DNA of 62,924 nt, filler included, from Pelomyxa schiedti (Eukaryota > Protista > Evosea), in NCBI GenBank assembly GCA_020536535.1. It is 9 parts of 9 records of this genome, joined end to end, with 100 filler letters (N's around TTAATTAATTAA, not from the genome) between each part and the next. Parts side by side here need not be neighbours in the genome. Positions count along the whole stretch, not along the records: positions 60,663 to 62,924 come from JAHLWZ010002050.1; 8 more parts are not named here. One strand, written 5' to 3'. Below are positions 60,563 through 62,924 of this stretch, piece after piece; positions within the stretch are counted from its first letter, which is position 1; each line of letters begins with the position of its first letter. The notes beneath the pieces were generated by a model. It was not told where the DNA came from, made no database searches, and saw only the letters and a list, made by a program, of their open reading frames with translations. Position numbers and translations under genes: made by a program.

Positions 60563-60965
60563 NNNNNNNNNNNNNNNNNNNNNNNNNNNNNNNNNNNNNN
60601 NNNNNNTTAATTAATTAANNNNNNNNNNNNNNNNNNNNNNNNNNNNNNNNNNNNNNNNNNNNAGTAACTTGGGGTGCGCCGATAGGGGGCATCGGCGTGA
60701 AAAACATGAAAAAACGTCCAAATTTCGTCCCCGTTAGGCGCCCCGGCAACGAGCGGATTGTGCCGTACAACGCAAAGAGATATCAAGGCTTTGATATCGG
60801 TTTGTTCCGCTTTGACCACAAAAACAAAACTACTCAGGGGAAAAAAAAAGAAGTTCGGTAAAGGGTTGTGTGTGCCTTGTCGAGATTGAAGCAAAGCACA
60901 CCAATGAAACAAATGGACCCCAAGAGCAGAAGCAAGGCATGTGACCATGACGAAAAAAAAAAGAA

Positions 60966-61061
60966 GCTCGGTAGCCCCGGCAAGATCCGATGAAGGACCC
61001 CCTAGACTTACACATTTTGCGTGTGTTGCTCAACCTCACGGCTGAACAAGCGCGCCCGAAC
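60966..61061 (-). ncRNA. Candidate structured small RNA, copy B (96 nt)
   Basis: Closing stem GUUCGG/CCGAGC, three hairpins (one with a GUGA GNRA loop), downstream T run, and upstream ACCCATAA at about -60. Confidence 0.6.
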
Positions 61062-61120
61062 CCGATCGTCCCATCCACTTTTGCTCTATTTCTGGGTAAA
61101 AAGTTCGGCCTCCGTTGCAA

Positions 61121-61128
61121 TTATGGGT
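61121..61128 (-). promoter_or_regulatory. DUSE-like upstream element ACCCATAA
   Basis: Matches the Dictyostelium ncRNA upstream element WCCCAYAA in sequence and in spacing (about 60 nt). Present for copy B only. Confidence 0.35.
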
Positions 61129-61264
61129 TCCAAAAAAATGAAAAAAAGTCTTTGCGGGGCCGTGGTTGCAGCCACGGTGGACCTTATGCTTGGATGTTGA
61201 CATACGTAGAATCCTCCCATCTGCCCTCCTACATGGGGGGAAAAAAAAGAAAAGAAAACAAAAA

Positions 61265-61359
61265 GTTCAGTAGCCCCACAGGATTTCGATCCCCTAGACT
61301 TACGCATTTTGCGTGTGTTGTTCAGACGCGTTGAACGCCCAAACAAGCGCAACCCGAAC
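61265..61359 (-). ncRNA. Candidate structured small RNA, copy A (95 nt)
   Basis: Closing stem GUUCGG/CUGAAC, the same three hairpins with different sequence, then TTTTT. Confidence 0.6.
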
Positions 61360-61384
61360 AATTGAAACTAGATGGGGGTGATGT

Positions 61385-61894
61385 CTATCCATGCAACCTA
61401 TTTGCAGCAGGTACCAAGACGCTTCCCCGCAGTGTGATGTCCCTTGTCTGCCAGTTATGCAATGTCCATTCTGTGTTTGCTGGTGGTACCCACCCTAAAT
61501 CCACCTGACCGTTGCATGATTGTAACACCACACTGTAAGGGCCCAATACACAGTACAGTGCAATACAGTTTAATGCATGATAAGTAAGTGGTAAGGGAAT
61601 GATAGTCAAAATCGCAGGTCGGTCCCGAGCCAATTGTGGGCCCCTCACAGTCACAATAGTCCTCACCTTGTTCTTGAAGGCGTACTCCTGGCTGTCCACC
61701 ATCACGACTCGCCCCCCACCCCCAGGCGAGCCACACGAAAATGACAACGAGAAAGGAGTCGCTGGCGCTGTGGTGTCTCGTACAGGCGGCGCCGGGGGGC
61801 GTGCGCCGCACTTGGCGAGTAGTGTGTGCGAAACGGCATGTGCGACGAGGATGATGAGAAAAGTCCCAAGGATGGCGAGGGCGACGCCGAACAT
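61385..61894 (-). CDS. Hypothetical protein with N-terminal hydrophobic segment
   Basis: ORF with a TM-like stretch and a probable intron; start unclear. Confidence 0.3.
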   Translation of the reverse strand: MFGVALAILGTFLIILVAHAVSHTLLAKCGARPPAPPVRDTTAPATPFSLSFSCGSPGGGGRVVMVDSQEYAFKNKVRTIVTVRGPQLARDRPAILTIIPLPLTYHALNCIALYCVLGPYSVVLQSCNGQVDLGWVPPANTEWTLHNWQTRDITLRGSVLVPAANRLHG

Positions 61895-62924
61895 TTCGCT
61901 GGTGGTGTTATTCCCAATTTGTGACTGACTGACCTCCGCAGGGTGGCCTGTGATCAGTGCCGGGAATTAACAGCCATCCCTTTCTTTTTGTGTGTAAGAC
62001 GAATGGGTGCCAGCTCCTGTCGAGGAGACCAAGCCCGACCACGCCGAAACCGCGAACACCTCCTACGACCAGTAGTGCACTCGACGAACAGGCACCACCT
62101 GGATTAGTTGCTCTCACTGCGTCGGCAGTGGGCATACAAGACTTCCCGGACGCACCTACATCATTTACCGTCCCTGGGCTACTCTTGAGACCGTTACAAA
62201 TGGAGTGAAGCAATTCATCAAGTTCTCGCTTTCACAGTAATTTAACAAACGGTTTGGAAAGCAGAATCCAAACGCGTCGCAGACAAGAACAGCACCATTT
62301 TTGGGGGTCAAATAACTCTAATTTCCTTTTTTTTTTCGACACCACCAAAAATCGTACTTTTGTTGTTGACAACAGATTGTACTTTTTACTGGAATCTGTT
62401 CCGAAGGATAAGGAAAAAAAATGTTTAGAACCGGATCGACGGAAAGAAAAGGTGATTCCATGTATTTTGAAACAGGAAACTGTTAGACCTAACAGTCAAT
62501 TCGTATTTTTTATGGTGTGTTTTTGTGTTATACCTAGTTGTAGCACTGGGTGGTTTGATAATTTTGTTTCTATGTTTTTTGTATACAACATGTTAGAGTT
62601 TTGTGTTGTATTCGGACTTTTTCTATGGTGCCATAAATTGTTGTGGTAATACTTTTGAAAGGTTATTTCAACAACCATGCTTAAAGCACAGTAGAAGGTG
62701 TGTTGTAACAACACCTTCTTCTCTTCTCTACCAGACACAAGCACTTGCTTGTGTTTCTGTTGGTTGTTTTATGGGAAAAGTACAATCTGTCCAGTGGTGA
62801 CCAGTAAAACTCAGATTTATCTGCTGAAATTGACCGGTTACCACCAACTTTTGTATTTTCAACCTTCCTCAGACTCAGTTTTGAATGGGAACCAGGGGAA
62901 ACCTTGACCACAACCACAAGCTAC

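Follow-up and report, generated by a model that had tools for sequence, protein, structure and literature searches.

Copies A and B, a paralogous pair of neighbouring 95-96-nt units on the minus strand of DNA from Pelomyxa schiedti, may represent a new family of small RNA genes that are terminated by T runs and probably transcribed by RNA polymerase III (Pol III), a reading to which we give a probability of roughly one half. The window, i.e. the whole stretch of DNA that was analysed, comprises 62,924 nucleotides (filler included), and both copies lie in the piece from 60663 to 62924 (JAHLWZ010002050.1; all positions are those of the window). A new non-coding RNA family had already been proposed in the first-pass annotation of this DNA, and it is still the best reading because units under structural constraint that end in T runs match no entry of ARAGORN or Rfam 15; homology that is bounded to the units and constraint of minus-strand polarity point the same way. 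A strand-specific structural constraint on two paralogous units is supported by the analyses below, from which we infer transcription, the polymerase, the exact ends of the RNAs and any function they have.

Results

Two paralogous units on the minus strand

All features listed in the first-pass annotation are present and correctly placed (Table 1). These include the closing stem, formed by GUUCGG with CUGAAC in A or with CCGAGC in B, hairpin 1 with its 12 pairs in A and 10 pairs in B, hairpin 2 (ACGCA-AAA-UGYGU) together with the invariant AAGUCUAG, hairpin 3, and finally GGGGCUAC, after which the T run begins. GUAAGU, too, is found in both copies as had been claimed (61298-61303 in A and 61006-61011 in B, minus strand) and is part of an invariant 30-nt core, in which A and B differ by one C/U exchange. 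Homology between the copies extends from the GUUCGG 5' end to the T run only (local alignment limits 61359/61263 and 61061/60964). Over 120 nt, the upstream flanks of A and B are unrelated, with 69% of shuffles scoring as high, and the T run is the sole significant similarity between the downstream flanks.

Table 1. Positions of the two RNA units, their parts and the signals around them.
Feature	Position	Strand	Remarks
Copy A	61265-61359	minus	95-nt RNA unit
Copy A, P1	61354-61359 with 61265-61270		terminal stem
Copy A, H1	61318-61346		hairpin
Copy A, H2	61302-61314		hairpin
Copy A, P4	61296-61300 with 61272-61276		predicted helix
Copy A, H3	61280-61293		hairpin
Copy A, invariant 30-nt core	61291-61320	minus	last H1 bases, CAC, H2, GUAAGUCUAG, first G's of H3
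T-rich run after A's terminal stem	61241-61264	minus	T5 G T4 C T4 C T8; putative terminator
CCCCCATCTAG	61368-61378	minus	direct repeat, 9-19 nt upstream of A
CCCCCATGTAG	61229-61239	minus	partner of CCCCCATCTAG, directly after A's T run
Copy B	60966-61061	minus	96-nt RNA unit
Copy B, P1	61056-61061 with 60966-60971		terminal stem
Copy B, H1	61026-61049		hairpin
Copy B, H2	61010-61022		hairpin
Copy B, P4	61004-61008 with 60973-60977		predicted helix
Copy B, H3	60982-61001		hairpin
Copy B, invariant 30-nt core	60999-61028	minus	based on alignments
T-rich run after B's terminal stem	60953-60965	minus	TTC T10; putative terminator
ACCCATAA, DUSE-like	61121-61128	minus	60-67 nt upstream of B
Solo 3'-end motif C	60841-60858	minus	CCGAAC then UUC U9; CYGARCTTYTT match at 60848-60858
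Solo 3'-end motif D2	61098-61108	minus	CCGAAC then U5; between A and B

Predicted fold

Manual structural alignment and RNAalifold agree on a consensus fold common to A and B, which is a four-way junction. The two ends of the RNA meet in the terminal stem P1, which has 6 bp. Of the three arms, H1 is a hairpin with 12 bp in A and 10 bp in B, H2 is a hairpin of 5 bp whose loop is AAA, and the third consists of helix P4, in which AGUCU is matched with GGGCU in both copies, and of hairpin H3 enclosed by it, with 5 bp in A and 7 bp in B. The three-hairpin arrangement proposed earlier holds as far as the hairpins themselves are concerned, but what had been taken for a linker is largely one strand of P4, and because this AGUCU pairs with GGGCU, the hairpins do not simply stand in a row but form part of a four-way junction. 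Since P4 is invariant between A and B, this helix is to be regarded as a prediction only. In each copy, the consensus fold lies at most 2 kcal/mol from the minimum free energy (-33.5 kcal/mol for A, -38.7 kcal/mol for B). Relative to shuffles, folding of the minus strand yields z-scores of -3.0 (A) and -2.4 (B), while the plus strand (-0.4 for A, +0.1 for B) folds no better than shuffled sequence.

Retention of base pairing

All 31 gap-free pairs that the copies share are standard pairs in A as well as in B. Ten of them vary and none is broken: in nine, one side has undergone a transition via G-U, and in the tenth, which belongs to H1, both partners have changed (from G-U to C-G). Insertions and deletions are neutral to structure as well, with B lacking the two top pairs of H1 and having two extra pairs in H3. 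Altogether, 11 substitutions fall into paired columns without breaking a pair, whereas a neutral simulation expects five broken pairs. In this simulation, which started from A and placed 9 transitions plus 2 transversions randomly in paired columns (200,000 trials), all pairs stayed intact in 2.6e-4 of the trials, i.e. about 3 in 10,000; with 19 substitutions spread over all alignable columns, the corresponding value is 4e-5. Both figures are to be read with the stems tested having been defined on copies A and B themselves. The earlier description of the stems as covarying captures the fact that pairing is kept at 10 of 10 variable pairs, yet is too strong as only one pair changes on both sides; a check on covariation returned this one double change, which 243 of 500 shuffles equal, and with two sequences this control is without power.

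Every non-Watson-Crick pair is a G-U on the minus strand. When read from the plus strand, 7 of the 31 pairs in A and 9 of the 31 in B become A-C mismatches, and the constraint therefore acts on minus-strand RNA. Together with fold z-scores that depart from shuffles on the minus strand only, this bears out the polarity that had been assigned to the RNA on first inspection. The share of G-U is high (7-9 of 31 pairs), and a mutation bias linked to transcription could have inflated the number of one-sided transitions. If the sense strand accumulated C-to-U and A-to-G changes in excess, this would act in the same direction as retention of pairing, but would hardly be expected to account for nine out of nine.

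Two other candidates for what is encoded here were rejected. An RNA read from the plus strand (e.g. a U1-like one that uses ACUUAC) would fold at shuffle level and carry A-C at 7-9 of its pairs. A protein-coding exon is at odds with a 1-nt indel that follows GUUCGGG: owing to this indel, the open frames that cross A and B do not read the conserved GCGCUUGUU in the same frame, and the units are therefore not coding.

Flanking signals

As the first-pass annotation had it, both units end in T runs, with T5 (A) and TTC T10 (B) adjoining the terminal stem, and so both show a generic feature of Pol III genes, namely at least 4-5 T directly after the 3' end. The run of B was also recovered in a simple terminator-like scan. 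On the 5' side, the situation is less uniform. ACCCATAA, which resembles the DUSE element (WCCCAYAA), is indeed present 60-67 nt upstream of B, but the link drawn from it to the RNA units is unsupported: no WCCCAYAA is found upstream of A, and its two matches in the piece are a chance-level count that 10 of 100 shuffles reach. The sole upstream word common to both copies at a similar offset is ATAGA (at -29 in A and -28 in B), which would make a poor TATA box. No box A (TRGCNNAGTGG) was found in A or B when up to 2 mismatches were allowed; a word like box B (GGTTCGANNCC), with 2 mismatches, occurs in the third arm of A only and at chance frequency, and it is not kept at the equivalent place in B. 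A convincing promoter shared by A and B is thus not seen.

The word formed by CYGARC and a T run (CYGARCTTYTT) is found four times on the minus strand, where 0.02 are expected, with a spacing of 113-162 nt. Two of the four are the ends of A and B, and the other two, the solo 3'-end motifs C and D2, come without a recognisable RNA body. The 100 nt upstream of motif C show no significant similarity to A or B (p 0.08 and 0.42) and an ordinary fold (z -0.9), and the covariance model derived from A has no match at either solo motif. Consequently, a third full copy at C (60853-60952) was rejected on all three counts: similarity, fold and covariance model. The solo words may be relics of truncated copies or, alternatively, may be a word with a role of its own; a simple gene model leaves them unexplained. 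Just upstream of motif C, a hairpin of about 10 bp (GGUGUGCUUUG with CAAGGCACAC) is found at 60870-60903 on the minus strand.

On either side of copy A lie CCCCCATCTAG and CCCCCATGTAG, an 11-nt direct repeat with 1 mismatch that 7 of 500 shuffles match in quality, and CCCCTGAGTAG, which is similar, comes after the solo motif C (60830-60840, minus strand). The two words could flank A in the manner of a target-site duplication, and they could equally be signals like those of 3' splice sites.

Searches for known families and relatives

The statement that the units match no known RNA has withstood the searches: ARAGORN calls no tRNA gene and cmscan with Rfam 15 finds no match in the whole piece, nor in a short slice around copy A (slices of 131-136 nt, E up to 10), and the slice around copy B, at E up to 10, gives only chance fragments of 7-12 bits, as opposed to thresholds of 33-70 bits. 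The families covered in this way include the U snRNAs, U7, 5S, SRP, Y_RNA, Vault, SL1/SL2 and ribozymes. A presumed likeness to U6 and U6atac in their 3' parts, and another to the Sm-like sites of U4atac and U7, gained no support from computation and were set aside.

When a covariance model was derived from the sequence of A alone and the consensus fold, it recovered B in full length with 49.4 bits (E about 1e-11; A itself scores 117 bits, by construction) and had no further match in the rest of the piece (60663-62924). Outside this piece, a 23-base pattern of the core is without match in metagenome and prokaryote-genome collections, and so is a 20-base core pattern in viral contigs. A gapped pattern (GTAAGTCTAGGGG, gap, GGGGCTAC) is likewise without match in the prokaryote-genome collection and has two matches in metagenomes (L001, L002), which were rejected as relatives and put down to chance on account of their unrelated contexts, the missing T run and their being missed by the covariance model. 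In full-text papers, 12-14-mers in DNA and RNA spelling retrieved only unrelated primer and guide sequences.

Surrounding DNA

The piece that carries the two copies has about 47% G+C (31 to 61% in 200-nt windows), CpG that is not depleted (observed/expected 0.83) and many homopolymers of A or T, and it looks like eukaryotic, largely non-coding DNA. Its open reading frames gave no Pfam match (5 ORFs) and no exact entry in protein collections (11 ORFs). The one that lies at 61385-61894 on the minus strand, within a G+C-rich block (up to 61% G+C), would encode 169 aa with a hydrophobic N-terminus; with neither a Pfam match nor a homolog nor an exact entry in protein collections, it is probably no real gene or else an orphan first exon.

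Repeats are found at several places. The word GAC(T/G)TTTTTTCAT(T/G)TTTTT occurs twice on the minus strand (61132-61150 and 60700-60718), 432 nt apart, and may be the trace of an old duplication of larger extent, although what lies between the two words cannot be aligned. A higher-order repeat of about 430 bp, with A plus spacer set against C plus spacer, was rejected, for it is only T-rich words that align. Within the right end of the piece, which is rich in A+T, an inverted repeat with perfect 15-nt arms (62372-62386 and 62776-62790, 389 nt apart) could mark the ends of a small transposon-like element, where no obvious target-site duplication is apparent by eye. Imperfect inverted repeats are seen at 62283-62366 and 62682-62730 (26-nt arms with 81% and 20-nt arms with 80% complementarity), a short palindrome surrounds a GATATC site at 60773-60804, and a G+C-rich hairpin (GCGCCGAT ... 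ATCGGCG) lies at about 60674-60699 near the left end.

Discussion

Our preferred reading, that A and B are genes of a new small RNA family, would see them as paralogous genes for a non-coding RNA of about 95 nt read off the minus strand. Its terminal stem would carry three arms, the long H1, the short H2 and a composite one in which P4 encloses H3, and its transcription would most simply stop in the T run after the terminal stem so as to leave an oligo-U tail beside the stem. Such a T run is a normal terminator for RNA polymerase III. H1 and H3 may serve as structural spacers since their sequences have drifted while pairing was kept; the 30-nt core (H2, GUAAGUCUAG and flanking bases), in turn, hardly differs between the copies, is a likely working surface for the binding of protein or RNA, and includes a perfect GUAAGU that resembles a 5' splice site.

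It is this GUAAGU from which an alternative view may be developed, according to which the units are structured modules in a longer Pol II transcript, each composed of a non-coding exon and a short spliceosomal intron. The exon would run from GUUCGG to AAAAUGY and would be followed by GUAAGU, a branch-like CYGARC, a pyrimidine tract and UAG, so that the T runs would be polypyrimidine tracts rather than terminators, and P4 and P1 would bring donor and branch together. In line with this, GUAAGU is perfect in A and B, the CYGARC plus pyrimidine run is far in excess on the minus strand (four against 0.02 expected) and occurs two times without an RNA body, and the tract of A ends in CCCCCCAUGUAG, with a similar CCCC..UAG upstream of A and after motif C. 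The would-be intron of A measures 75 nt and includes CUGAAC, a 30-nt pyrimidine tract and UAG. The homology, however, has a sharp onset some 56 nt before the donor, and this onset is not a splice acceptor but a base with its pairing partner at the 3' end; P1 would, moreover, sequester the putative branch site, no AG follows the tract of B for about 80 nt, and an AG soon after a T run is to be expected by chance. Because the 'exons' would be non-coding, and those implied between the units only about 23 nt long, the view has further difficulties, and to our minds it is unlikely.

Slightly less probable in our judgement is a scenario in which A and B are copies of a repeat or mobile element, e.g. 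a SINE of tRNA origin that ends in a T-rich tail, or a local tandem array in decay, whose fold is inherited from a source RNA rather than functionally maintained at this locus. Discrete unit boundaries amid unrelated flanks would be expected of such an element, the direct repeat around A (11 nt, one mismatch, 7 of 500 shuffles) is reminiscent of a target-site duplication, the solo 3' ends resemble 5'-truncated copies and the topology is cloverleaf-like. SINEs are recognised by target-site duplications together with an A-rich or simple-repeat tail on every copy. At this locus, with its two copies, A has the 11-nt repeat with 1 mismatch, the 5' part of which stands 8 nt off the unit, while B has no flanking repeat, and there is no A-rich tail, the tail being T-rich on the structured strand. 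Neither box A nor a conserved box B is present, similarity to tRNA is found neither by ARAGORN nor by the Rfam tRNA model, and pairing has survived the substitutions far better than would be the case under neutral decay. For the same reasons (no tRNA call, box A absent, a box-B-like word in A that is not kept in B), the tRNA-derived or vault-like origin that the first-pass annotation had offered as an option was not borne out.

Could the two copies instead be genes for spliced-leader (SL) RNAs? On this account, the first 50-56 nt, ending in AAAAUGY, would be donated in trans from GUAAGU, the donor would be held in hairpin 2 and the T run would end transcription. GUAAGU is invariant and, through its G and U, is paired in H2 with bases of the 'exon' that precedes it; the putative junction of exon and intron falls within the most conserved block, and several copies are found side by side. 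Protist SL RNA genes end at pyrimidine or poly(T) stretches, just as T-run termination would have it here, and their Sm sites can diverge highly (PMC6053224). Known leaders, by contrast, are 15-52 nt long and end in G, and the Sm site AAU3-6GG/U lies in the single-stranded part of the intron (PMC6053224). The leaders proposed here, at 56 nt (A) and 50 nt (B), would be at or beyond this range and would end in C or U; no canonical Sm site is seen between GUAAGU and the 3' end, and a relaxed Sm rule is fitted only by A-CUUUUU-G at the terminator of A and not by B. The 5' 40 nt of the 'leader' also differ strongly between A and B, its words are without match in full-text papers, and its 5' end would be locked in the terminal stem with the 3' end. 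SL RNAs are not known to have their capped 5' end tied to the 3' end in a terminal stem. The motif behind this account is GUAAGU, and a 6-mer of this kind is met in a 95-nt RNA by chance at about 2%, with many 'famous' motifs there to be noticed. Both the idea that A and B are SL RNA genes and its corollary, an atypical SL system with a long structured leader that ends in AUG plus pyrimidine, with no canonical Sm site and with GUAAGU as its working donor, therefore strike us as quite improbable.

More doubtful still is that A and B specify a highly diverged RNA of a known Pol III ribonucleoprotein (vault or Y RNA) missed by current models, which would fit their size (95-96 nt), a terminal stem that joins the ends with the oligo-T terminator directly after it, variable interior arms and the fact that the Rfam models Vault and Y_RNA were built mostly from animals, but not the failure of short slices to match Rfam at E up to 10, a terminal stem of just 6 bp without a bulged helix of the Ro-binding type, the absence of box A or a box-B-like word that is confined to A.

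Should the preferred genes be expressed, they would add an undescribed family of structured small RNAs with an invariant core that includes a perfect 5'-splice-site sequence. New small RNA families turn up regularly in little-studied eukaryotes and are not surprising per se. Yet Y RNAs, vault RNAs and Class I RNAs, all of them lineage-specific Pol III RNAs, each opened the way to a new ribonucleoprotein, and a pair that is cleanly bounded and conserves structure would seem a reasonable entry point. Stakes would be higher only if GUAAGU were functional, be it as a donor in trans-splicing or as a decoy for U1.

Comparison with known small RNAs

With SL RNAs, copies A and B have in common a consensus 5' splice site sequence (here, GUAAGU) that is placed in a short stem with upstream bases, clustered copies and, as in SL genes of protists, a T run that would end transcription (PMC6053224). 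They differ in that there is no canonical Sm site, a leader would be variable between the copies and the two ends of the RNA are paired with each other.

The likeness to tRNA lies in a cloverleaf-like shape, with a terminal stem plus three arms and a T run downstream, and in the third arm of A, which holds a T-loop-like GAUCGAAA that is not kept in B. A tRNA has a 7-bp acceptor stem, a D arm, an anticodon arm with a 7-nt loop and a T arm, whereas in A and B the first arm has 10-12 bp and the middle arm a 3-nt loop.

Y and vault RNAs, at about 80-115 nt, are of similar size and share the terminal stem followed by an oligo-U tail as well as a variable interior. Y RNAs have a long terminal stem with a bulged Ro60 helix, as opposed to 6 bp and no bulge in A and B, and the conserved A and B boxes of vault RNAs are absent from the two copies. 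In addition, the interior of A and B, a four-way junction with an invariant core, is unlike that of either class, and neither copy gives an Rfam match.

Dictyostelid genomes are far more A+T-rich than the piece with A and B, which has about 47% G+C. The Class I RNAs of dictyostelids measure 42-65 nt, with AAG at the start and CUGU at the end, have an 11-nt motif that adjoins the 5' stem and need a DUSE, which is placed about 60 nt upstream of each expressed gene (PMC7919456). The units described here are 95-96 nt long, start with GUUCGG and end with GAAC or GAGC; the 11-nt motif of Class I RNAs (CCTTACAGCAA) has 0 matches with up to 2 mismatches allowed, and a DUSE-like word precedes B only, at chance level. 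Alike are the multiple copies, the short terminal stem, the maintenance of structure over sequence and the T run downstream, and in both cases a conserved block is combined with a variable interior (PMC7919456).
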